DNA of 64,000 nt from Amoeboaphelidium protococcarum X5 (Eukaryota; Fungi; Aphelidiomycota), in NCBI GenBank assembly GCA_023515725.1, contig JALDTO010000235.1, forward strand, positions 650,778 to 714,777, written 5' to 3'. The position numbers and the translations under genes are program-made. Under the pieces are notes generated by a model. It was not told the origin of the DNA. It searched no databases and saw only the letters and a list, made by a program, of their open reading frames with translations. Shown here piece after piece: positions 1,581-61,742 of this stretch. How positions within the stretch are numbered: position 1 is the first letter of the stretch; each line of letters starts with the position of its first letter.

Positions 1581-1971
1581 TTCTTACTCGCCCATTAATA
1601 CTAGAATTTATAAATAGTGCTTTTCTCAATATAAACTCTAAACTTCAACAACAACGTATCAAATATGAATGAATTAAACTTTTCTTCGCGAAGAAGAAAC
1701 AGAAGTCTCTTCTGAGAGGGAAAGCCTAGGAGGCGCGATCAACAGAACTTAATACACGTTCAAGTTTTGCATTGAATACTCATAGTGATAATGACAATTA
1801 AAAAAAGATTGTATATTGCCAGTAAAAGTCATCTTCCAATAATTGAATATAGTTGAGGAGAGAGAAAATATATGCAGGTATCATCATTAGATCAAAATTA
1901 TCACGAAAAAGGCAAATAATACGATCGACTTTCGTAATCATCTAAATGCATTCAATACAGTAATATTCAAT

Positions 1972-2418
1972 TCACTTTCTAGACTTTTTATCACTATTAT
2001 TACCCGTATTCAAACTGTCAGATTCATCCGAGACTTCATCATCGTCTGACTTCCTCAACAGCTGAGCTTCTTGTTTAAGAACGTTCAATTGTCCAAGTTG
2101 CTCGTCCGAGAAGGAACTCAGCCTCGCGCCAATGCTCATTCCAAGTGTACTATCAGATGACTCTTGTCTATTATTGTTACTATTATCATTGGCATTTGTA
2201 GACAATTTCAGTTATTATTCTAATGTGCGTGCATAATTAGACCATTCATTTAGAAATGGTGGTACGAAGGCTGGATCACATTCTTTATGTCGCCTGAACT
2301 CATCCTTTGCATACTGATCACCAAGATACTTCATGGCAGGTGGAAGTTGGAGGTGCAATCTCAGAATCTTGGCGTACAATTTCAATGCAGGCGTCTTTAC
2401 TCTCTTTTTCAGCACCAT
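1972..2418 (-). CDS. SDHAF3: Succinate dehydrogenase assembly factor 3 (ACN9/Sdh7, LYR family)
   Basis: LYAKILRLHLQLPPAMKYLGDQYAKDEFRRHK...FLNEW..Y; two track ORFs fuse across TAA TAA; later IGARLS..FSDEQLGQL; ends TGA. Confidence 0.9.
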
Positions 2419-21394: not shown

Positions 21395-21877
21395 ATGAGT
21401 GCTCCGTAACATCCAATGAAGAAATCCTCGCCTCTAAAGCCTAAACAATCACCGCTAAATCCTGCGAATAATAGTAATAATAATGCCTAGTAGTAATAGT
21501 CTAAAGAGGGTGGGCCTGATCTTTCTAAATTGACTCCTCAAGAGCTGTAAATATACAAAAAGTATGGTAAATTGCCCACGAAGAAGGATATTGTGTCGCA
21601 TAAGCTGAAGGAGAGAAAATACTTTGACTCGGGCGATTATGCAATGTACAAGGCTGGTAAGACTGGTCCAACGGGCGCCAATGTTGGTTCTGTGCATCCA
21701 TCACCTGATATGATTCCACACTCTAGCCCGGCGGCGGCAACTAATGTCCAGGTGCACCCTCTGCCTCACGGTAGCAGATCTAGTGGTGGACATGACAAGA
21801 GTGGTGGTAATGATGCTGCAGAAGAGTAGAATTAGAATTCAGGTGCTGGCGATACTAAAACTGTTGAAAAGTCATGA
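21395..21877 (+). CDS. Endosulfine/ARPP19 (Igo1-like) PP2A inhibitor
   Basis: KYGKLPTKKD...ERKYFDSGDYAM; ATG 21395, TGA 21875. Confidence 0.92.
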
Positions 21878-22006
21878 GTTTTTGTAGTATACTGTACCGC
21901 CTCTATCTATATATATCTATCTACTGATTGAGTGAGTGAGTGAGTGATTTTTAGCATAAACAAGCTTTTGTATGTTATACTTTTAATAGTTATTTTTACT
22001 CACGTA

Positions 22007-22888
22007 TCATTTCTTAAACAGTTTGGGATCTACCTTAAGTACACCTTTGACGTATTTCCCCATACCAGACTTTAATCCACGTTCAGAGCTAGATCTCGTA
22101 TTTTTGATGCCCAAAAGCTGCTTGGTCTTTTATCGCTTGGTATTATTTCGCACAGTTTACGCTAGAGGATGTGATGAGCTGGTGAGAACTAATGATGATG
22201 ATGACAATGATGAGGATTTAGAACCGGGATTTTTAACAGTCACCTATCTACCAGTAGTAGATGAAGCGAAATGGAGTCCATCATCGCCAGCCTGCTTAAT
22301 TAGAGCCTATTGCTTCTCAGCGCGCTGCTTGCTCTTCTTCAGCATTCTCTGCATCAAACCTTGTGGCACCTTGCACTTCTCCTATTTGACGAGTCCGAGT
22401 GCATGTAGCTTCTAATCCATAAATTTCCTTCTATCCTTACCATGCATATGTTTAAGCGATACTTGTTCCAATTCCATATTGACCAGCTTATGGAGTTCTT
22501 TATCCAATTTTAGATTCTCCAGCTCTTCGTTATCACTGTCATCCTTGTTATCTTGACGCGTCGCCTTACTTGCACCAGTCTTATCCTAAGGCGTATTAAC
22601 TAAAGACTATTGGATGTCTTTGATGGATGCAGACATGAATTTCCGTCTATCCGACTTGCCGTTGTTACTCTTATTCTATCTTAGTCCACTATCATTAAAT
22701 TCTACAATCTGCACCTTGTTTTGAGGCTTTTTTTAACCATTAACAGCAGAATTTTCAATCAGTGAGTTGGTGCGCACAGTCTAGTCTGGGTTCAACTTGT
22801 TAATAGACTATTATCGCTCTTATACAGCAGTCTTGGACCGAGTGTCTGACGCGTACAATGATATCAAATCCTCAAATTCTATTTGCAT
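22007..22888 (-). CDS. Faf1/C1orf131-like (DUF4602) 40S biogenesis factor, 293 aa
   Basis: ENLKLDKELHKL, GKDRRKFMDQKLHALG, KVPQGLMQRM, C-terminal RGLKSGMGKYVKGVLKV; absent from the track. Confidence 0.7.
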
Positions 22889-22999
22889 TTTGATTTATTG
22901 TATTAATTTGCTTTAATAATAAAACTGTGCAGATCAAAGTGAAAACATGAAAAGGTCTAAGTAAATCAAAATCATCGTAGAAGAGCTTGTTAAAATTTA

Positions 23000-24169
23000 T
23001 CAATTTTTATCGCGCTATTGCACAGCTTACTGAGTAACTAGTTTAACTTATTCAGCGATTCTCTAGATATCCTTGGACGGTATATCTCCATCAATAAAGA
23101 TAGAAGAGTTATCTGGCCTGAATAGTTTCGACCGATCAACCAACTATGAAGATGACAACCGCAATCGAGATATAATATACTTGTTGGCAAGATGAGATCC
23201 CAGTACCGCAGCATAGCATAAAGAAACCAGCGAGACACCTGCAGTAACTTCATAAAATGACATTTATTCATATAAATATTCCAACTGTAATCGATCGATA
23301 GAGGATGCAACAATGGCACCAGAACCACCGAGGATAGAAGTTACTCCGGCAGTTATTTTAGCAGTTGGCATCAGCTGTAATTTAGAAGAGGACAACTGAC
23401 CATCGAACGCGTTAATAGCCAATTGGAAATCCAAATCATCTGAATATCTCAACTTTGCAAAATAGAATGGCATATACACCAAACTATATTAAGTCTACTC
23501 TACTTTAGGTGTGTTCTAAACAGCTATTCTGCATCTTCGAAGATGGAAATTACACAAGTCTGTTGCTCTCCGAAGAACATTTTCAGTACTGTGATGTAAA
23601 GCGCGCTAATCCACATCATTCCAACTAGCATTTTATTATAAAATTCCAGACTTAGATAAAACTTGCATTGTACAGCCATCAAGAGCAGCCATATTCAAGT
23701 TCTCGCGATTGGCATCTAATCCTCTAATCAAATCGGACTTTTCAAAATTAACAGGAAACTGATTCCAGAGTTGCATATTATCATGATTAGATTTCACCAA
23801 ACTCTACTATTTGAATGGAAGAGATATCTTGAAGGGATTTGTGAAATATCCAGCGCGGTAAACTCTACCCGCTCTACTAAGAACTGACTTTTCTTTAATC
23901 GCGTCAATATGCAATCGAACATCCATCTCTACATTGAATACGTCTGTCTAAAGATAGAAAGGTACAAGTGCAGCCGAAATGTCTTCAATCTCTGGCTTTC
24001 TACTCATCGTGATGGATGAGTTTAAATGGTATATCCGCTCTACTCTCTCTCTTGCGTCATTAGCTGTAATCTTGAATGGCAGATAAAAAGCACGAGGATC
24101 TATGGCACTCTATTTTCTAATTTACGCAAGTCTACCCTAAGCTGAACGTGCAGCAGAACTCAGCGACAT
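23000..24169 (-). CDS. Hypothetical membrane-anchored protein, 389 aa
   Basis: Continuous frame ATG 24169 to TGA 23000; FYLPFKITANDAR..ALVPFYL and VYMPFYFAKLRY..LAINAFDGQL; hydrophobic C-terminal segments. Confidence 0.7.
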
Positions 24170-24434
24170 ATTAATAATGGATTAATGTACCTATTTGATG
24201 AATGTAGTAAGTGATATCTCGTAACGTTGTCTACATGTGAGCTCCTCTTCAAACGCGCTCCATTCCCCCTATTAACACTACGCAGAGCGCGTTCCCAGAA
24301 CGAGCGCGCGCGAATGAACCCAACCTTAGCTCTGAGGTGAACGCGTAAATTTTCTTTCGCTGATCAAAAATAGCATAGGATTCCCCTTTGTAAGTGTGTA
24401 GATTCTATTAGTACAAAGATTATATATATTCAGA

Positions 24435-24872
24435 ATGGGAAAGAGTAAAGTACGTGGTTTGAATGCAGCACGTAAATTGCGCACTAAGCGTCGTGAGAAT
24501 CGCTGGGCAGACAAATCATACAAGAAGCGTGCCTTGGGTACTGCATATAAATTCAGCCCCCTCGGAGGTGCATCCATGGCGAAAGGTATTGTGGTGGAGA
24601 AGATTGGTGTCGAGTCCAAGCAGCCTAACTCTGCCGTCAGAAAGTGTGTGCGTGTACAGTTGATTAAAAACGCAAAGAAGGTGACCGCCTTTGTGCCAAG
24701 AGACGGTTGCTTGAATTTCATTGAGGAGAACGACGAGGTGCTGATTGCCGGATTCGGTCGTAAAGGTCGCGCTGTCGGTGATATTCCCGGTGTTAGATTT
24801 AAGGTGATCAAGGTGGCTGGTGTTGGTCTCTTGTCGCTGTGGAAAGAGAAGAAGGAGAAGCCAAGATCTTGA
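24435..24872 (+). CDS. RPS23: 40S ribosomal protein S23 (uS12)
   Basis: [22 protein letters not shown]...[10 protein letters not shown]...KKEKPRS. Confidence 0.99.
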
Positions 24873-25037
24873 TTACGCTTATCCTCTCATTACTATCTAT
24901 CTATCTATTATCATTATTGTATTGTCGTCATATGAATAGTGATAATAATGATCGATACTATAATAATAAAATGGTAAAAACTTGATATTTATTCTTCCAT
25001 TTTCTTTAGTATTATTTTTATTCAAGCGACGTTTAAT

Positions 25038-26285
<1,248 letters not shown>

Positions 26286-26544
26286 CTTGCAGCAGAATAT
26301 CTTATAACGTATACACGATGATAGGCTGTATTTATATAGAGCAATGAGGAAAAGCAGATAAAAACGGTTGTTGAATCGAAAACTGAAAACAAAATTATGA
26401 TCGACCGCTCCGATTCCACAAATAACCCAACAATCAGAAAACTTTATGAAAATCAAGTTCAATATAAAAATCTCCCTGTACTTTTTCTTTATCATGTATG
26501 TGATTTGCAAAACATATTCATAAAGTATATCAGAATGCAATCTC

Positions 26545-27021
26545 TCAACGACCAGCGGTGACGCGCTCAAAGACAGTGTCGTATGCCACCTCGCTCAGAT
26601 CAGTGCCTTAAATCTCGCTGCCAATGCCGACGAGTTTACGTCTCAGCGCGTCTTTGCTCGCAGCGTAAAGCATCTTTGACTTCACTCGGCTCTGCTCAGG
26701 AGCCCACACGTAGAAGCAGATCTTGTTGCGCACACCCTCACCTTGGGTATCCCACTCGAAATCATACACAGCATATCTGCAATCATCTCTAGGCAGACTG
26801 GCCACAAACTCATCATAATCGCTGCACTCCTGCACAGTCTTTTCTACTTCAATCGCCTTGTTATCATCCGATAGCTTAAACACCACATACTTGTACTTCT
26901 TCTTCAATTTAAGCTCTTAATATACGTGCAGACATTCGTCATTTACTTGTACTCCCGTGCTCTACAATCAGGTCGCTGTTAATGATATCAATCATGAAAA
27001 TGGATATAAGTAACTTACCAT
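26545..27021 (-). CDS. Cofilin/ADF paralog 1; ATG-only exon 1, intron 26962-27018
   Basis: ATG|GTAAGT...TTGTAG|STGVQVNDEC; CRYAVYDFE; KSKMLYAASKDALRRKLVGI; EIQGTD (Q=TAA). Confidence 0.96.
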
Positions 27022-27279
27022 TTTTGATATTTGTGTATTTTATTATTGTAGAAATAATATTCCGATCTATTGAGAAGAGAAACTTACGAAGGTAATCCCT
27101 AAAGGTGTTAATTGACGGCGCTCTCGAAAGAGTACTGAAATCGATGCGATTCACGGCGAGAATCTTGTGCGCGCGTGAGAGTCACACGATAGCTTAAAGA
27201 AGCTTTTAATGTGGCGCATGTAATTTCTATTTGGACTTTAAGGAGTCTTCTGATTAATAAGAAACTCGGCCAACAACAA

Positions 27280-28953
27280 TCAGTTTTTACTCATCAACAA
27301 ATCAATTTCACTTTTCAGTCTGTTCATGGTGTTGTTCACAAACATATCTGCACTGTTCTCGTTCAATGCACTTATAGACTCTGCAAAATCAGAGTACCGT
27401 CTCATCACGAGGTTCAGTTTGGCTTCAGGTAGAGACGATGGAATCTTCTTGATAGATGCAATATGTTGATCAACGACATACTGGAATCGCGGCCATAGTA
27501 ACAGATTCACTCCATTCAGAAAAGAGTCCAGCGCTGGAATCCGTCTGTTCTGCATAATTATTTGGCACTGCGCGGTAATACGAATACACAGCAATAGACC
27601 GACCGCATCAAAACTATTCATAACAATGGTCGAGATCATTTCCTACACAGACTTTATACTCTTACCGAACACCTACTGGAAAATCTCCTGAACCAATTAT
27701 TTTCCATTGTAATGGCCTTGAGTAAAAGAGTCGGGAGGGCGAAAGAACTCTGTAATAAAACTGTACTCAGATGATGCATTGTCGAGTAGTGTCCTGCATA
27801 CAGAGCGGAATACAGCTTCCACGAGATATTTAGCATTCTGTTCCTCCGCCACATGAGGGATAATCACAGGCGAATCCATGCTAGTTAGTTACTTGACTCT
27901 ATCACCCAAAATGAATGGACTTATTTTACCAGCCATGTTTGATAAAGCTGAAGTTCCCTTCCCAGTGGCCACCATCAACGCCTTTTTCAGATTCAATCCA
28001 GACTGGCCATCATCACTGCCGATTAGCTCCGTCTTATCTCCAACGGTTACAAGTGTTTTCTATAATCTACTCACGTACTTTCCAAATCTGGCACTGTAAT
28101 ACTACTACATAAGATACTCATACGTCAATCTAATTTCAGTCGAGGCTTCATGATGTCTCATCGAGATGAAGTGATTATAAGCCCGGAAATTTAGTAGCAT
28201 CTTCTAAACGACAGGAGCATTTGTATTCTGACTACCCAGTTACTGCAATCTCTCTAATAGAAAATGTCGGATACGCTCTGTAGCTTTCAAGCGCAACTTC
28301 TCCATCACTGGGCCAATGTCCTTGTAAGCTCTGATATGATTGTGCGAATGCGATTTGACGTAATTCATTTTACGGTTCAATTCGATTAGAGTATGCAGAT
28401 ACAAATCCCCATGCAGATCACCCTCACATAGCAGCTTAATCTCCTAAGGTGTCAGTAGAATACCTTCAATAACTGTGCCCATAGCTGCTTTGGCGGCCAG
28501 TCTATTCTTCAACTTGACAGACTTGCCAATCGAAATCTCTTGCAGTGCCTGAATATCATTCGACAGTTGAGCCAAATCACTTTAAAACCCATTCAATAGA
28601 CTCTCCATATTTTACAAAATCGCATCACTTCCTTTCACGTGCGTATACAATTCAGCCAGTTGAGTAGAATTCGCCACATGATTGTCAATCAAATGCTCTT
28701 CCTTTGCAGATAGCTCCTTCTTCAAACTAGCGATATGCTCTTTAACGTCGATTCCACTCTATGCAATACTATTAATGTACTCTTTATCGACTACACTCTC
28801 TTCATTCCCATGTTCATTATTATTATTTGGACTTTAAGAATCAGCATCCTAATCATTTTCAACTTTAAACAGAAAATTCAATACTGCTTAATCGTTAGTT
28901 GACAAGGATTGCACATTAGTAGTTCTTTACTGCTATTATGATTCCACTTCCAT
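27280..28953 (-). CDS. VPS52: GARP complex subunit Vps52 (557 aa to first TGA)
   Basis: DAILQNMESLLNGFQSDL..KLKNR, MEKLRLKATERIRHFL, VFRSVCRTLLDNASSEY, SFDAVGLLLCIRI, LLWPRFQ, RRYSDF. Confidence 0.92.
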
Positions 28954-37696: not shown

Positions 37697-39563
37697 ATGA
37701 GGTAGGCTGTGTATTTTATTTCTTCAGGTAGAACTCCTAGTATCATTGTTATATTGTAGTGAAATTCCTTTGATTTCAGTTTACGCCCAGGCGTTGTACA
37801 GTGATGGTCAATGGCGCCCATTCTCTGCTGGTTACAGCCAATTGATCTTGTATGGAAACAAAGATGCGCACACCTATCGCTTGATAGGCCGTAATGTTGA
37901 CGATAATCAGTTCATAATCAATTCCTAGTTCACTGCCACTGGAGTTCAGTATCAGCAGGCGTCGGATACGTTTCATCAGTACTCAGATGGCACGAATGTC
38001 TATGGATTCAACTTCTATCAGCAGGATGATGCTCGCCAGTTTGCCGAAGCTTGTAATGCAGCTTTGAAAGACTTGGCCACTCCATAACCTGCCCCACCAC
38101 CGGCTATGCCACCACCAGCTATGCCGCCTGCAATGAATAAGTTGCCAGCTGCATCATCTACTGGTAGTAAGTTTGGAGCACAGGCTGCCGCTGCTCAAAG
38201 TAATCCCGCTCCAGCTCCATCTAGTGGTGGTGGTGGACCCCCACCTCCTCCTCCACCTGCGCCTGCTGCAAGTGTTGATGTTGATGATTCCGCCGCAGCT
38301 GGTAATGGTTTGGCAGCTGCTCTCTCTGGCGTAAAGCTGAAGAAATCCTCAGCACCGCCTCCTAAAGAAGACTCCCCAAGTCATGGCGGTGGTAATGCCA
38401 AGGCTCCAGCTCCGTCTGGTGGCGGCGGCGGAGGTCTTATGGGCGAAATGGCTGCAAAATTGGGTAAACGCACTCAGATTGCAGACCCAGCCCCAGCTGC
38501 ATCAACGGGATCAAGTGGCTCGCTCGCTTCTAAATTGGGATCTGCACCACCTAATACGTTGGCGGGAGCTTTGAAGGCGAAGAATATGAACTCTTCAGCA
38601 TCAAACGCGTCCATGAGCGAGTCCAAGTAGGAAGAAGCTGCTCCGGAAGTAAAAAAGTTTCCTTTGAACAAGTTTGGCCAGCCAGCTGCATAACCAGCAG
38701 CAGCTCCTCCTGTCGAGAAGGAGCCAGAAGCACCAAAGTCCAAATTTCCGGGATTAAAGGTTGGTAATAAAGCTGCTGCTGCCGCTCCAGCTGCTGAGGA
38801 AGAAAAGGAGCCAGAGAAGCCAAAGTTTGGCCCACCTGGCGGCAACAAGTTTGGTGGTGCAACCAAGTTTGGTACACCAGCTCCACCGCCACAGGCTGAA
38901 CCACCCAAAGTTGAAGAATAGGAGGAGAAACCAGCATTTGGCAATAAATTCTAATCTGCTCTGAACAAGAATCATCCACCTAAAGAGGAAGAAGTCCCTC
39001 CTCCAGCTGCCGATTTCCCAAAAAGCAAGTTTGGAAACGGTAAGTTTCCATCTGCATTGCCTGATAGCAAGTTTCCGCCACCGTCTTCGGTTAATAACTC
39101 TGCTAAAAGCTTGCCACCACCAGCTTCTATCCCTCCACCGATGGCTAAAGCAATAAGCCCGTTATAAGCTGAGCCATAGAACGCTGATGCTGCAGATGAA
39201 GATGACTGGGAATCTTCGCCTCCAAAGAAGGGCGCGCCTGGTAAATTTCCGTTCGGTAATAGTAAGGCCAGCAATAATACGTCTGACAGCTACGGCGGTT
39301 CTGCTGCAAAGAATGCTGATCATGATTCTTCATAGGATGTGCATCATTCGGCGTCCCCATTTGGAGCTACTAAAGAATCGCTGAAATCTAGCCGTAAAGA
39401 ATTGCCGTCTGGTAACGATGGAATGTCAGCAGAGCAATTCCAGTAACTGAAGGAAGAGATGGTGAGTGTTGTCAAGTCTGAGATGTAGAAGGTCAAGGCG
39501 GAGATTGAAGACACACTACGCTCTGAGATTGCACAGCTCCTCAAAACTTTGATGGGCAATTGA
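37697..39563 (+). CDS. Ena/VASP-family actin elongation factor (EVH1, poly-Pro, EVH2), 602 aa; intron 37702-37759
   Basis: MS|EIPLISVYAQ..QWRP..TYRLIGR..TFHQY..VYGFNF; GPPPPPPP; GLAAALSGVKLKK (GAB); GGGLMGEMAAKLGKR (FAB); C-terminal coiled coil LKEEMVSVVKSEMQKVKAEI. Confidence 0.88.
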
Positions 39564-39686
39564 TCAATAGCGAAGTAGGTATAAACGATGAACAAAAGAA
39601 ATATAGTTGATGGAATTTAAATCTAACAGTGGCTTACGAATTAATCACGCCATTTTCCATTTTCAATCGACGCGACCGTTCGTTGA

Positions 39687-40723
39687 ATGATTTTGAAATT
39701 ACGCAGCAGTCGCTTTTAAACTTCAGCTCTACACTCTGTAGCAACACGAAACTTTTATCGCTAGATGACTTACACTACTAGAACTGTTGGTGCACCAAAC
39801 TCTTTGGATTACCGTCTATACATTGGTAGGATTTCCTTTTGCGTGGTTGTAAACATTTTACGTGATGTTACCCATTATAATGCGTGTATGTAGAGAAGGA
39901 CGGTAAGGCAGTCTCGGCGTTCCATGACATTCCTCTGTACGCTAATGCGGAAAAGACTGTGCTTAACATGGTGGTGGAGATTCCTCGCTGGACCAACGCT
40001 AAATTGGAGATTAGCAAGGCGGATGCATTGAACCCAATCAAGTAGGATGTGAAGAAGGGCAAGTTGCGCTTCGTCAAGAATTGCTTCCCGCATCACGGTT
40101 ACATCTGGAACTATGGCGCATTTCCATAGACTTGGGAGGATCCTAACCATGTGCATCCGGAGACTAAGGCTATTGGTGACAATGATCCACTGGATGTTGT
40201 GGAGATTGGCGAACGTGTCGGTCACATTGGACAAGTTAAACAGGTGAAAGTATTAGGTGTAGTTGCACTTCTGGATGAGGGCGAGACTGATTGGAAGGTG
40301 ATCACGATCGATGTCACTGACCCTCAGGCAGATAAGGTGAATGACATTGAGGATGTGGAAAAAGTATTCCCTGGACTGTTGAAAGCCACTACTGAATGGT
40401 TCCGCATCTACAAAATTCCAGATGGCAAGCCAGCTAATGTTTTCGCTTTCAACGGCGACGCGAAGAATCGTGATTACGCTCTCAATGTCGTGGCTGAGAC
40501 TAACGAAGCCTGGAGGAAGTTGATTACCAAGGCTATCCCTAACAAGAGCGACAAGTATGATATTTAGACCGTTAATGTGAATGTCAAAGATAGTCCGTAC
40601 TTGGTTGACACCGCTTCGGCTGAGTATGGTAAAATTGCTCCAACTGCCTAGTAGCTGACTGCTAATCCTGTTGATCCTGCTATTCACAAATGGTACTTTA
40701 TCAAGGGAGATTCTAGCCTTTGA
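39687..40723 (+). CDS. IPP1: Family I inorganic pyrophosphatase; alternative ATG 39765; intron 39826-39893
   Basis: [50 protein letters not shown] (Q=TAG), [22 protein letters not shown]. Confidence 0.97.
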
Positions 40724-41884: not shown

Positions 41885-42376
41885 ATGGTAAGTTGTTTAT
41901 CTCTCACCCCATGTTTTATTCAATGTTCATTTATTCATTCATTCGCCATTATAATAGTGTAGTCATCCGGTGTTACTGTAAACGACAAGTGCCTTGAAGC
42001 ATTCTAGGATTTGAAGTTGAAGAAGAAGTACAAGTTTGTGCTATACAAGCTGTCTGATGACAATGCTTCCATTGTGTTGGAGAAGAGCGCCGAGGCTGGA
42101 ACTTACGATGAATTTGTCTCCAGTCTGCCAAAGGGCGAGTGCAGATACGCAGTCTATGATTTTGAGTTTGAGAAGCCTGGCGAGGGTCAGCGTAACAAGA
42201 TTTGTTTCATTGCATGGTCTCCTGATTCTAGCAAGATCAAGTCAAAGATGTTATACGCTTCCAGTAAGGATGCTCTGCGTAAGAAGTTGGTTGGTGTTTC
42301 TACTGAGATTCAGGCTACTGACTTGAGCGAGATTGCGTACGACGTGGTCTTGGACAAGGTGAGCAAATCTAGTTGA
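41885..42376 (+). CDS. COF1: Cofilin/ADF paralog 2; ATG-only exon 1, intron 41888-41962
   Basis: M|SSGVTVNDKC; CRYAVYDFEF; WSPDSSKIKSKMLYASSKDALR; EIQATD. Confidence 0.96.
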
Positions 42377-56839: not shown

Positions 56840-56958
56840 TTCAAAAGCAGTTATTTAATTATTAAAGATTTCTATCTATCAAGTTGTCGCTGTATAAAAC
56901 GTAAGACTAGACTCTGTTGAAGAAGAAAGAAGAAGTGAATTAAGGAAAAGCGCACCTC

Positions 56959-56999
56959 TACGGAATCCGAGAGCCGCAAAAGCGCGTCGCTATTTAAAA
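56959..56999 (+). repeat. Left TIR
   Basis: TACGGAATCCGAGAGCCGCAAAAGCGCGTCGCTATTTAAAA preceded by CACCTC. Confidence 0.93.
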
Positions 57000-57748
57000 A
57001 GCAGAAACGAATATTTGTTTCTTACAACTGTTTTTGTTTTTAATGTTCGAGAGCCGCAATCAGTGCCTCACATTAATACATAACGTTTTTGCACTTGTAA
57101 TACGCGAATGCGACTTAACAAATTGATTAATTTTTGTGATTACTTTCTTATTTATATCATGCTGCAAAATCAAATGTATTAGTCATGCACCGTGTGTGTG
57201 TTGCTTTACTTTAATGTGCAACTTGCGCAACTGCAGCAGTATTGGTGTAAATATCTCAAGATTTTTAATATAGCAGTATTTGCTCCGCTTCTCTAGTAAA
57301 GAAATATATGCACCAAACCTCAAGCAAAAATTTGCAAACTGTTTGTGAGTAGTGGTTGCTCGATCTTTGTCACAACTGATTGCTTGATGCGTTAATCTCG
57401 AAACTGGCGCTTGCAATTTAACAGTAAGTAAGCGATTATTTGTGATAAATTGTTTTGATACTGAATGATACTTTATTATCTCTTACACACTATTCACTAA
57501 ACTACTTTTTAACAACGTACAATCTTATTTGCGAGATAAGCATACAGGTATAAGCAATGCAGCATTGGGACGCCGTAGTGTTGTCATTACTTGCTGCGCC
57601 ACCCCCCTTACGCCACTCTAAGATCTTACGCAATCATATTATTAATAACAGCTCTCATAGTTCAGATAACTAAAACGCGACAAATATACGCAATCTCTTT
57701 AGTTGATATCTATATCCTAGTGTCTTTTGAATAGAATCAGTATCAAGC

Positions 57749-59764
57749 ATGTTTAATCCGTTGTAAGATGTGTTATGTCCCAATTCGTCCGGACTCAAAA
57801 GGGAGGACTGTCATTGTGCTGGATGTAAATCTTGGCAATAGGCGCAAGCCTAGTTGATGCATTCACAAATGCAATTTGAGTAAAAGAAAAAGCTTGCGGT
57901 GCAGACAAGAACCGAGTCAATGGTAAATAGATTGCACAGTGGATACCAGACTAAGCCGCCGCCCCCTGTTCATAGAAACGGTCCTGGTAGTGGAAATAGA
58001 GGTTTGACGCGTAAAAACGCGCTGGTGCAAATTAGCATTGTCCCTTGTATTTCAGGATCAAAGGTTGGATAATTTAAGCGTCTGGAAAATGTTGGCCCAT
58101 AGATGATTTAGATTGACAAGTATAATGACAATTATCAATCTGTCTTAGCATAAGCTTGTGCATTGTTTCACTATCAAGTTGAGCAATCGTCAATTGGACA
58201 AAGTCAAATCCACCAAATCCCCTAATTTGGAGTTGATTTTGACGTAATATAATGGACCCAGAATATTCAATTGGCAGGATGTAAGTATACCTCTAATAAG
58301 GATAAGGTGCTATATTTGATTCCGTTGGTTGAAAGCAATCGCGTGTAATTGCATCCTAGTTTAAAGAGAAACTATGAGTCTCTACAGTAGCTGAATTTTT
58401 TGAATGTCGAGGACTTTGATTACTAGTATGGTTTGCCAGATGAGAAGATGCAGGATAAGGATGATTTTGAAATTGTTGAACCGACGCGTACTTTAGATGA
58501 GCCTATTATTCAACCTGTCAAGCCTGTCAAAAAGATCAAATCTGCGCAGGAGTCTACGATCATACCTGTCAGTTCAAATGTTGCGAGAAATAGTTAGATT
58601 GAACATAAGAATAAGTTTTGCTAGTTTGAAAACATTTCCAAGGTGTCCCCTCAGCGTGTAATAAAAAATACGCGCTCCTTGTAAGGCAGTGTGGTTGTGC
58701 ATGTCTACGACTATGAAACAGGCTCCTGGTTCACTGAGGATCCAGGAGTAGTTGGAATGCCAGATCTGGCAGGAAAGACTAACAAAGGGAATATAAAAAG
58801 ATGCTACTATAATGGATCTCTGGTCAAGTTTTTTCCAGATCTGCCAGTAGTCTTTAAGTGCGCAATTGATAAGGATGACGATGATTATGGATTACATGCT
58901 AGGGAAATATTAAACTCTGTTTGCGCTCAAAGGTGCTTCCTAGATTTTGACGCGGAATTGATTAAGACGCTGCTGGGTTAAGAATATCTATAGGTTGCTG
59001 GTGAGTAGCGTGGAGTTTGTGCTGGCGTGATGCTGGAGATTAGAGACAAATAAAATGAGGAATTTGGTGATATGGTGGATCTAGCAAAGATATGGACAGT
59101 TGAACCCTTCGTAGATGGCCAATTTGTGAAGTATATCGACAACGAGCATTTTATGCAAATTTGTGATGATGATCAGACTTATGAGGAGAACTTTCGTGAA
59201 GAAGTGGCCTGGGCTTTTGCCCATTACTCCTATTATTGGTTTGAGAAGGAGAACTACGAGTAAATGATAGTTGATATTCAAGGCTCTAAGTGTCACTTTA
59301 CAGATCTTTAGGTGTGCACTGTCAATGGCACCGATTGCAGTATTGGCAATATGGGTTTACCAGCAATTGTGAAGTTCTTCGTTATGCACTAGTGCAATTA
59401 GATTTGCAAGGCTTTGCATTTAGATGTCGCGACCATTCCGTCTTTAGTAATGGAGAAGATTATGGAAGATTCTCTCTTAATGGATAAATTCGAGTCCACT
59501 GTGTTTGGATCTCCAGCATAGGCCGCTCCTAATCCTCTTGGATAGTAGAAGACATCATTGAAGTCGGATGTCTCCATAACTTCTGTGTCTAAACAGGTAG
59601 AAGTTAATAATCAAGCCACTCAGGATTTGCAGATAGTAAAGGAGAAATCTAAGATTAAGTTGGTGGATCCTATTGTTAAAAACATACGTCCGTCTAGCAG
59701 AAGACCTAATACGCGTGCTAAAAATGCTGCGTAGAAGAAATTGCCAACTTTGACTGAGGATTGA
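57749..59764 (+). CDS. Alpha-type (eEF2K/MHCK-like) protein kinase, transposon cargo, 671 aa
   Basis: GNIKRCY, VVFK, WTVEPFVDGQFVKYIDN, AFAHYSY, IVDIQG, FTDLQV, GNMG, HQCNQIC..LHL; N-terminal C-x10-C-x-C-x2-C. Confidence 0.9.
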
Positions 59765-59849
59765 GTATTTAGTAGCTCTGGTGGAGTTAACAATGAGTAC
59801 GTAAAGATAGTAATAGCAATAAGAAATTTTTAATTATTCAGACCATTCT

Positions 59850-61229
59850 TCACTAAGCAATTTCCTACCCTCTCACTTACTATTCTGCTATCAACAATTA
59901 ATCTCTAAATGCATCCAGCGCGCTTACGAGATCGCCATCGGACACTAAAGCCTTGAACACATCTTGACAATTGTCAAAGGTAAGTTGATCAAAACCTTTC
60001 TCTATAACAACTTCATCAATAAGATGCCTAGCGTAATTAATTCTAAACCTATCATTCATATCTATAGTACTTGGTCCAAACAATTGAATAGCCATATCAC
60101 GCATGTCTTGAGGAGGCTCCAAACCACATTCTACTCCATCAAACATCTCGGGAACTTGATAACGCATGATGGGCTGTCCTTGATTTCGAATCTTATGGTA
60201 ATTCCACAAGGTGGTAATTTTATCTAAACACTCAGCGATATAATGTCCAAAACAATACTGAGAAATTGTCTTATGAGAATAAAGCGTGGTATTAAAATAA
60301 CCTGCAAAGTGAAGATTGTTCAGCGTTCCTATCCAATATTCAAGCCCATAATGATTCTATCTGCCCCAGTAACTTTCTATACGCGTATTGAAATTGGATG
60401 AACCCACAATATAAGAGTTCTCACCTACCAATATTTCTTGCAATTACTTGATGTAATTGTTCTCAGTTCCGCCATCAACACGAACTTTTCCAGGCATAAC
60501 ATTGCATTTGTCAGCCGCATCCAGAAAATATTCCAGTATGTAACGCGCGGGCCTATTCGTATCTGCGACCATACTAAACACAACATACCTACTAAAACCA
60601 TCTACACACGCACTTATTCCAAAGCCAAACTACGACAGCTTATCGAAGCCATCTATATGCCACACTTAATTAGGACCATCATTTTAATATTCACGGCGTT
60701 TCAACTTGCGCCTTTTACGCATTTACACAGCCTCTGGATTGTCGAATCTTTAGCAAACCATAACCATGTCTCGAGATACTTATTGGCCTGATAGTTCACG
60801 AAGGACTTATGTAGTTGATCTAATTCCCAATCTTTCACCTTCATCCTGATTTACAACATGCACTAAATCCAAAACTTCGACAGGAGATAGCGCACAATGT
60901 CTCGTTCCAATTTAATGCTGCGACAAAATCGATTGCAAAGTCCTTAAGGACATTTAAATATTATGCTTCTATTTCAGCCAATCCAATAATTATTGTTAAG
61001 TGGACCCGCCATTAATTAGATGGCGAGCTTCTTCAATCCAATGTTCACTTTAATCCGCAAATGTGGCTCTATTTAAAGCAGTACTCAATCCATGTTCAGT
61101 CATAAACCGGTCCAATTTGGACTTGGAGCAGATTGTTCCACTAGAATTTAGAGTATCTAAAATTTCCTTGCGCTTCAAACCTTAATTTACTAACTGCCGT
61201 ACCTGTTCCAAGTCGATTTCTTAAGACAT
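59850..61229 (-). CDS. Transposase: tandem HTH-like repeats plus DDE integrase core, 459 aa
   Basis: RREYQNDGPNQVWHIDGFDKL..FGISACVDGFSR; PGKVRVDGGTEN; GSSNFNTRIESYW; LWNYHKIR; continuous only if TAR=Gln. Confidence 0.92.
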
Positions 61230-61403
61230 TTTGCTGCAAAAAATGAATTCGAGTTAAGATGTCCCCTATTATAAGGCGGATATAGTGCATGATAAGAAAC
61301 AAAATAGCAATGAATTTATTTTTAAAATTACAAAACAAAATAAAAATTAAAAATCATTTAAAATATTAATGGGAACTTTCATTTTACTTTCTATGTTTAG
61401 TAA

Positions 61404-61444
61404 TTTTAAACTGCGAGGCGGTTTTGCGTTTCTCGAACTCCGTA
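61404..61444 (-). repeat. Right TIR
   Basis: Reverse complement TACGGAGTTCGAGAAACGCAAAACCGCCTCGCAGTTTAAAA; followed by CACCTC. Confidence 0.93.
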
Positions 61445-61742
61445 CACCTCTGAAGGAAGAAATGAACGCGACACGCATCGACCGCGCGATCATAACGAAT
61501 TAACAACGCGATCATGTAAAGACGACTGGCGGTACTCCTTACTCTGACGCGAATGAAACTTCTTCGCCTCAGGCAGACTGAATCGGTCGCGAGTGACTCA
61601 CATCACATTACGAGTGATCTTTCCGTTCAATCTTTCCCGTTACAGTTCCCAGTCATCTCATTGTGTTCTATTCTCAGCTACAACAGTTTCATTTCATCTT
61701 TCTGTAGTTCTTCACTGTGAAACTTTACTCAAGTAGTTCAAG

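Follow-up and report, generated by a model that had tools for sequence, protein, structure and literature searches.

A 4,486-bp element (positions 56959-61444 of the window, by which we mean the whole 64-kb stretch of DNA analysed) lies between two perfect copies of the hexamer CACCTC, the left at 56953-56958 and the right at 61445-61450, which form a 6-bp target-site duplication. Directly inside them are 41-nt terminal inverted repeats: the left arm (56959-56999, forward strand) begins TACGGAAT, the right arm (61404-61444) reads TACGGAGT on the reverse strand, and the left is identical to the reverse complement of the right at 33 of 41 positions. The termini, TACGG at 56959 and CCGTA ending at 61444, are of the TA..TA type. 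In a scan of about 211,000 inverted candidate pairs in the window (1-12 kb apart and sharing a terminal 6-mer), only the element ends scored above 29 of 41, and among the high scorers theirs was the sole pair with identical outer 6-mers; a finder needing an exact 9-mer seed had missed these repeats, which our own 6-mer scan recovered. A 23-nt degenerate pattern of the inverted repeat likewise occurs at 2 places in the window, both of them element ends, with 0 expected. The repeat core CGAGAGCCGCAA recurs subterminally as a direct repeat (57048-57059, forward strand), a possible second transposase-binding site; within the window the core matches 3 times, each time at an element end, against 0.6 expected. 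The left end was placed from the duplication and the inverted match, and the right end also from the point at which another copy of the element diverges (see below). The insertion is intergenic, in the spacer flanked by the porin and DUF1295 genes, with no ORF running across the junction; tRNA and Rfam scans of the window returned nothing.

Within the element are two convergent, intronless genes and no third. An alpha-kinase gene, called from its open frame, Pfam and codon usage, occupies 57749-59764 on the forward strand (671 codons, to 59761, plus TGA), and a transposase gene, called from its open frame and rva_4 core, occupies 59850-61229 on the reverse strand (459 codons, 61229 to 59853, plus TGA). 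By these coordinates, 85 bp separate the two stop codons (59765-59849). Both frames are open when TAA and TAG are read as glutamine, a usage that occurs in each gene at host-like rates: from stop to stop, the kinase frame contains 28 in-frame TAA/TAG codons and the transposase frame 27, and neither contains a TGA. Reading TAA and TAG in this way creates many spurious long ORFs in the element, and only these two score as coding by host codon usage (+0.21 bits/codon for the kinase, positive over its full length, and +0.14 bits/codon for the transposase, with the other ORFs inside the element at or below 0). Pfam was run on stop-free standard-code pieces, while translations with TAA/TAG as glutamine were used in our own scripts. 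The host genome is related to fungi and most likely that of Amoeboaphelidium (assembly GCA_023515725.1); a ciliate, which the genetic code had suggested, was rejected because the closest matches of ribosomal protein S23 are in chytrid and zygomycete fungi. An earlier note on this DNA had claimed CACCTC on both sides, inverted ends identical at 33 of 41 positions, and two convergent, intronless, uninterrupted ORFs of 459 and 671 amino acids that the standard code hides; the duplication and the ends lie where it placed them, and the ORFs and their concealment are borne out by the recoded reading.

The transposase has the hallmarks of an integrase-like DDE enzyme. The piece at 60447-60629 matches the Pfam rva_4 integrase core (E 1.2e-8), and the whole protein aligns end to end with an rva_4 protein (P0002; 30% identity, 443 residues, E 5e-59). 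Its catalytic triad region (60375-60653, reverse strand) comprises D193 (WHIDG), D252 (RVDGG), and E285 (RIESYW), at positions matching the conserved WHFDQ, RSDRGAEN, and NQRIESWW of its relatives. The first catalytic D is thus residue 193; residues 1-190 hold no CxxC or HHCC pattern, and a basic cluster, RKRRKLKRR, lies at residues 171-179. Of the HTH-plus-DDE architecture suggested earlier, the DDE part stands and the HTH part is weakly suggested by alignment of the N-terminus to a homolog with a sub-threshold HTH_17 match. We rejected a start 51 codons further upstream, at another in-frame ATG, as the added stretch scores -0.10 bits/codon and falls outside the P0002 alignment. An exhaustive protein search with a 152-aa piece of the transposase gave 12 matches, the best non-self match being 33% identical; word-index searches from P0002 and from the alignment added almost no further relatives, and none were found among viral contigs.

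Fungal IS3EU elements have 6-bp duplications, TAYGG..CCRTA termini, and inverted repeats of more than 30 bp (Kojima 2025, PMC12730594), and the IS3EU/GingerRoot group is marked by the absence of an HHCC zinc finger before the core and by a first D 100-300 residues from the N-terminus, here D193. Judged by Pfam, alignment, termini, and duplication against these published hallmarks, the element is of the IS3EU type, as had been proposed from its TA..TA termini, 6-bp duplication, and integrase-like DDE core. Ginger1 and Ginger2 have target duplications of 4-5 bp, with an HHCC motif in the Ginger1 integrase, and IS481EU has duplications of about 4, 15 or 25 bp; an identity with any of the three was rejected on the 6-bp duplication, the TA..TA termini, and the lack of HHCC in our element.

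The second gene proved to be what had been claimed, an alpha-kinase: Pfam Alpha_kinase (PF02816) matches a 69-aa piece at 59054-59260 (E 1e-7; 32.7 bits against a cut-off of 21.3). On the two further copies described below, this gene was called in fragments that bear precomputed PF02816 matches. The conserved C-terminal half of the catalytic domain (59054-59428, forward strand) contains VEPF..KYIDN (residues 451-465), FAHYS (490; AHYS 491), VDIQG (508), FTDLQ (517), GNMG (533), and HQCNQIC (547), and with them the catalytic-loop, metal-binding, and zinc-site motifs (DxQG, TDxQ, GNxG, H..HxCxxxC). The equivalent stretch of a divergent relative of this kinase (L003, below) aligns to Dictyostelium myosin heavy chain kinase A (3lkm) and also to the eEF2 kinase and TRPM7 kinase structures. 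Could the kinase ORF nonetheless be a decaying passenger without function for the element? Its activity is predicted from sequence, Pfam recognises no domain in the N-terminal 300 residues, and the changes between copies (3 non-synonymous, 3-4 synonymous) are too few for selection to be demonstrated. However, its 671 codons contain 0 TGA where about 15 would be expected from trinucleotide frequency, the catalytic and zinc-site motifs are retained, the codon-usage score is positive along the whole kinase, and the gene is conserved over the deep divergence that separates it from L003. We regard a decaying passenger as very improbable.

Near-identical copies with both genes present occur on two public contigs, L001 and L002 (99.5% and 99.85% identity, respectively, over 2.7 kb); syntenic host DNA in the other three versions is 90-97% identical. 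The flank of L001 differs from that of the window, with divergence beginning exactly at base 61444, the TACGG end of the right repeat, and therefore, as these junctions read, there has been more than one insertion of the element. Between the window copy and L001 there are 14 differing positions, 4 of them in the 85-bp spacer, and the differences between copies leave both ORFs open, one being an in-frame TAA to TAG change. In exact protein look-ups, a 63-aa kinase fragment was found on L001 and L002 alone, the porin piece, nine further flank and element ORFs, and several small ORFs gave no match, and no empty site was recovered with the flank and element ORFs. Based on the one different flank and the high identity of L001 and L002, the intact element is probably still mobile, and the recent activity claimed for it is likewise probable, with copies 99.5-99.9% identical and one of them at a different site.

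These copies also bear on whether the locus is instead a relic that can no longer move, or a pair of genes domesticated by the host, with inverted repeats and duplication left over from an insertion long ago. Consistent with such a history are the single copy in the window, the host-like codon usage and TAA/TAG use, and the 8 of 41 positions at which the arms of the inverted repeat differ. The right inverted repeat, however, is identical in the window copy, L001, and L002, and because of this the differences between left and right arms are, by this comparison, a family trait and not decay. In addition, the duplication is perfect, the DDE triad is intact, and the 99.5% identical copy on L001 has a different flank from the exact terminus, all of which make a relic or domesticated pair improbable.

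How old, then, is the association of the two genes? On L003 (metagenome contig ERZ27280272 k141_205127), an rva_4 transposase is followed by a convergent alpha-kinase. The transposase is 31% identical to that of the window (E 1.5e-39), the kinase is 33-37% identical (E 2e-9 to 2e-10) and itself matches Pfam Alpha_kinase (E 2.5e-14), and in the transposase tree the window and L003 sequences fall in one clade (SH-aLRT 98). L003 is very divergent from the window element, its ORFs stay open under the standard code, and no inverted ends were found on it or on the HECT-bearing contigs mentioned next. Because L003 has the same convergent alpha-kinase beside a transposase only 31% identical to ours, the transposase/alpha-kinase pair is, as judged from these two loci, old and inherited together, and the kinase a long-standing partner gene of the lineage. 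In other rva_4 lineages the neighbour is a HECT-domain gene in about 5 families and nothing recognisable in many, a survey of gene context that covers the relatives other than P0002, P0003, P0004, P0010, P0011, and P0012 (no contig or too short a one). Among 80 metagenome loci, Pfam found HECT instead of kinase beside the transposase, and a two-sequence local profile, with which Pfam agrees, found no further alpha-kinases. Because these other lineages adjoin a HECT gene or nothing recognisable, the kinase is, across the loci sampled, not universal in the superfamily.

The age of the pair bears on a further alternative, that a one-gene IS3EU transposon recently took up a host alpha-kinase as cargo, which would make the pairing novel. 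The kinase does sit within the inverted ends, and the partner gene does vary from one rva_4 lineage to another (HECT in about 5 families, none recognised in many), from which it follows that some past capture must have occurred. Against a recent one, L003 has the same convergent pair at about 31-37% identity for both proteins, the pair has been reported in rust and Tuber IS3EU families (PMC12730594), and the rest of the 64-kb window contains neither a paralog of the kinase nor another copy of the transposase. We consider recent capture very improbable, and two earlier claims do not survive: that the kinase is cargo, which the divergent pair on L003 contradicts, and that the pairing is undescribed.

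Indeed, IS3EU elements so far described encode two proteins (PMC8232023), and the TET+ families of IS3EU in rusts and Tuber have a transposase gene and an alpha-kinase gene in opposite orientations (PMC12730594). By description, IS3EU-7_PSt, IS3EU-3_PCor, and IS3EU-1_TuIn (rusts and Tuber indicum; PMC12730594) share with our element the duplication length, termini, repeats, and gene pair; as a further likeness, IS3EU-1_PGra begins TATGGAGG, to be compared with TACGGAGT, the right arm of our element. They differ from it in carrying a TET/JBP dioxygenase as a third gene between transposase and kinase, where our element has its 85-bp spacer, and in their hosts, ours being an aphelid-like organism that reads TAA/TAG as glutamine. 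GingerRoot (Selaginella and animals; PMC6839031), which is of one lineage with IS3EU (PMC10045372), has an integrase-related DDE transposase, a 6-bp duplication, and mostly TA..TA termini like our element, but the paper describing it (PMC6839031) makes no mention of a kinase or second ORF. Styx/REP9 of Zymoseptoria (PMC8232023, PMC10853768), reported to descend from a two-protein IS3EU element, resembles ours in its IS3EU-related transposase, its inverted repeats, and its duplications of 6 bp, but it carries four genes, including DUF3716 proteins, with no alpha-kinase reported inside, in contrast to our two. We found no literature linking aphelids or Amoeboaphelidium with IS3EU. The window element is not a new kind of element but another IS3EU with an already reported second gene.

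We conclude that this is very likely an autonomous cut-and-paste transposon of the IS3EU/GingerRoot superfamily, with the alpha-kinase as the lineage's own second gene. The DDE transposase (D193/D252/E285) would bind the inverted ends of 41 nt, and might also bind the CGAGAGCCGCAA core where it is repeated at the left end. It would cut the element out and reinsert it at a 6-bp staggered cut, which would yield the CACCTC duplication. As both genes have diverged together, we argue that the kinase serves the element in some way, and it may be kept through selection on the element. As predicted from its sequence, it would most likely be a catalytically active accessory factor; by hypothesis, its substrate may be the transposase or a host protein of chromatin or repair, whose phosphorylation would promote or time transposition. 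Such a role would parallel what the second protein does in other DNA transposons with two genes. In PIF/Harbinger, for example, a transposase is paired with a Myb-like protein. Nuwa/Harbinger is likewise mentioned as two-protein (PMC12730594). PIF/Harbinger serves as our working analogy for an accessory kinase, in that a second encoded protein travels with the transposase, but its partner protein binds DNA and has no enzyme role, its transposase is not related to ours, and its target duplication measures 3 bp.

A bolder proposal, which we offer tentatively and think rather unlikely as a whole, is that the kinase may be an essential active cofactor of an ancient IS3EU clade that includes aphelids and true fungi. 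More broadly, IS3EU/GingerRoot lineages might each carry, tail-to-tail with the transposase, a swappable protein-modifying enzyme that acts on the transposase or on host chromatin or repair factors; in one clade it would be an alpha-kinase, in others a HECT-type ubiquitin ligase. If true, this would be a modular "transposase plus modifying enzyme" design, undescribed for DNA transposons.

Thus, we present a clean, apparently active reference copy of IS3EU in an aphelid-like genome. Gene finders that use the standard code see neither of its genes, a point of importance for annotating repeats and kinases in such genomes. The transposase/alpha-kinase pair now extends from rust fungi and truffles to a lineage near the base of Fungi, and a compact, intronless two-gene copy is a convenient starting point for study of the role of the kinase.

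Here, we assign the element at 56959-61444 of the window to the IS3EU superfamily of DNA transposons. This is based on a 6-bp target-site duplication, CACCTC, found by direct sequence comparison at 56953-56958 and 61445-61450, on terminal inverted repeats of 41 nt that start with TACGG directly inside both CACCTC copies and are 33/41 identical, and on an integrase-type transposase. In rust fungi and Tuber, IS3EU families have 6-bp duplications, inverted repeats longer than 30 bp and TAYGG..CCRTA ends (Kojima 2025, PMC12730594), described IS3EU elements encode two proteins (PMC8232023), and TA..TA termini with 6-bp duplications are hallmarks of the superfamily (PMC10045372). Likened by published description, the element has in common with the rust and Tuber families the 6-bp duplication, repeats of more than 30 nt and the TACGG terminus. 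Every structural feature of IS3EU that we examined is present, and the classification given in an earlier note on this DNA stands in its ends, duplication length and transposase type. A literature search yielded no description of IS3EU from aphelids. The same note's claim that the pairing with an alpha-kinase was undescribed falls, because the two-gene alpha-kinase design is already on record (PMC12730594).

The duplication and the 33/41 ends were verified in the sequence and are unique in a scan of the whole window for inverted 41-mers spaced 1-12 kb apart. Among ~211,000 candidate pairs with a common terminal 6-mer, this pair alone exceeded 29/41, and among the high scorers it alone had identical outer hexamers. 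A degenerate 23-nt repeat pattern matched the window at the element's two ends only (expected = 0). A seed-based inverted-repeat search of the window did not detect the terminal repeats because their longest exact run is shorter than the seed length. The repeat core, CGAGAGCCGCAA, has 3 matches in the window (expected 0.6), all at element ends; they include a second direct copy at 57048-57059, 80 bp inward from the left end, which may be a subterminal transposase-binding site. Elsewhere, an inverted 29/41 match (22884-22924 and 26499-26539, 3.6 kb apart) encloses the genes for ribosomal protein S23 and methionine aminopeptidase; no target duplication accompanies it, and chance probably accounts for it, its score being in the background tail.

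Genes fill the window densely only under a code in which TAA and TAG are sense codons. With that code, the element holds an alpha-kinase ORF (57749-59761, plus strand, 671 codons then TGA) and a transposase ORF (61229-59853, minus strand, 459 codons then TGA). In-frame TAA/TAG codons number 28 and 27, respectively, in their stop-to-stop frames, and TGA is absent. Both use TAA/TAG for glutamine at host-like rates. Because this code has only one stop codon, spurious long ORFs occur in every frame. For this reason, every ORF within the element was given a codon-usage log-ratio score, with ten long host ORFs as the training set. The kinase (+0.21 bits/codon) and the transposase (+0.14 bits/codon) alone scored positive; since no score above zero was obtained for any antisense ORF or for the 790-bp left region, the earlier count of exactly two genes is upheld. 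Public gene calls treat this organism's code inconsistently: on L002, a contig with a near-identical copy of the element, one call (1682-2182, minus strand) gives a 166-aa Alpha_kinase product across 7 standard stop codons, the caller having evidently read through TAA/TAG, and adjacent calls end at TAA/TAG.

A Pfam search, confined to stop-free pieces of the element ORFs, bore out the identity of both proteins. The piece at 60447-60629 matches rva_4, an integrase core family (E 1.2e-8), and the full transposase, with TAA/TAG as glutamine, aligns end to end with the 444-aa protein P0002 (30% identity over 443 residues, E 5e-59), whose own rva_4 match has E 4e-31. Its catalytic triad is intact (D193 in WHIDG, D252 in RVDGG and E285 in RIESYW), and an HHCC zinc finger is absent upstream of the triad in the translated sequence. 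The helix-turn-helix that had also been claimed corresponds only to alignment with a region of P0002 that has a sub-threshold HTH_17 match. For the kinase, the piece at 59054-59260 matches Alpha_kinase (E 1e-7, over the curated threshold), and the motifs VEPF..KYIDN, FAHYS, VDIQG, FTDLQ, GNMG and HQCNQIC are retained. The corresponding stretch of a distant homolog, from ENA metagenome contig L003, aligns to the structures of Dictyostelium myosin heavy chain kinase A, eEF2 kinase and TRPM7 kinase at the catalytic loop, metal-binding site and zinc site; because of these alignments and the retained motifs, the element kinase looks catalytically competent. The transposase has a basic cluster (RKRRKLKRR) and the kinase a C-terminal tail rich in Lys/Arg, each of which would be compatible with nuclear import.

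Is the element still mobile? An exhaustive protein search returned its own 89-aa standard-code fragment (P0001), and exact look-up of this fragment found two further public contigs, L001 (JGI metagenome 3300048586) and L002 (Logan assembly of SRR845265), which are 99.5% and 99.85% identical, respectively, to window 58726-61444. Both carry the transposase and the convergent alpha-kinase. L001 continues 60 bases past the element and departs from the window's flank precisely at the TACGG terminus, which confirms the right boundary at single-base precision and marks a second insertion site; L002 extends a single base beyond the terminus, likewise unlike that of the window. Of the other copies that the earlier note proposed to look for, two were found with the kinase, one of them with a different flank at its right end. 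Since all three copies have the same right inverted repeat, the eight mismatches between left and right repeats are a family trait and not decay. L001 differs from the window at 14 positions and L002 at 4, but both ORFs stay open, and one of the differences turns an in-frame TAA into TAG. Between the convergent stops, the 85-bp spacer (59765-59849) holds 4 of the 14 L001 differences (three substitutions and a 2-bp deletion), a density ~10 times that of the coding parts, which would fit constraint on both genes. Identity between element copies is 99.5-99.9%, against 90-97% for syntenic host DNA; this would be consistent with recent movement. Together with the second insertion site, it supports the earlier reading, in that the element was probably active recently and is probably still mobile.

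The element lies in a short spacer between a porin gene (minus strand) and a DUF1295 gene (plus strand), divergently transcribed, and interrupts no ORF. The window's S23 has its nearest relatives in chytrid and zygomycete fungi, and its exact sequence occurs on four contigs, two in each of two NCBI assemblies; two Amoeboaphelidium genomes were published in 2022. Syntenic versions of 21400-27900 (L085-L088) are 100% (JALDTO010000235.1, GCA_023515725.1), 96.9%, 94.6% and 90.2% identical to the window, which suggests that both strains have divergent haplotypes or subgenomes. Elsewhere in the window, 38000-40000 is a local GC peak (0.485 vs ~0.40) with proline/alanine/glycine-rich low-complexity ORFs on both strands, and a cofilin/ADF-like sequence at 41978-42354, with ~68% DNA identity to the cofilin gene adjoining S23 (26500-27000 region) and on the opposite strand, looks like a diverged paralog.

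The earlier note had called the kinase cargo. L003, among the small number of distant homologs with informative gene context, argues otherwise: its rva_4 transposase is 31% identical to the window's (E 1.5e-39), and downstream of it lies a convergent alpha-kinase that shares 33-37% identity with the window's, so the two genes have diverged to a like degree with their arrangement kept. Judged from these sequences, a long-standing transposase-kinase partnership would predict this pattern, whereas recent capture would not. A metagenome scan seeded on P0002-like transposases gave 80 loci, and we ran Pfam on convergent ORFs of 90 aa or more that lie downstream in 36 of them, with L003 added as a positive control. 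No further alpha-kinase was found in this set, which yielded HECT ubiquitin-ligase domains in nine ORFs at eight loci, from about five distinct families. These ORFs (L016:2193-2513, L019:2646-3404, L022:4985-5743, L052:6308-7171, L060:7659-7940, L063:8467-8748, L065:3078-3485 and at L069; all minus relative to the transposase) lie 1-3 kb downstream of, and convergent with, rva_4 (IS3EU/GingerRoot-type) transposase genes. In the transposase tree, the window protein clusters with L003, L004, P0002, P0133 and P0004 (SH-aLRT 98), and the HECT-neighboured transposases form two other supported clades apart from this alpha-kinase-linked one; therefore, the partner gene varies among lineages of the transposase family. 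A search for element ends on the HECT-bearing contigs found none, and the HECT genes are candidate partners that may lie within such elements. To our knowledge, a HECT partner has not been described in rva_4 (IS3EU/GingerRoot-type) transposons.

With the element's anatomy, its intact DDE transposase and motif-intact alpha-kinase, the second insertion site and the conservation of the pair in place, a mechanism can be proposed. Transposition would be cut-and-paste with a 6-bp staggered target cut, and the transposase would bind the inverted ends and perhaps, at the left end, the repeated CGAGAGCCGCAA core as well. The kinase could act as an accessory factor that phosphorylates the transposase or a host factor. 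Swapping of the partner enzyme, alpha-kinase vs HECT, may have occurred among lineages.
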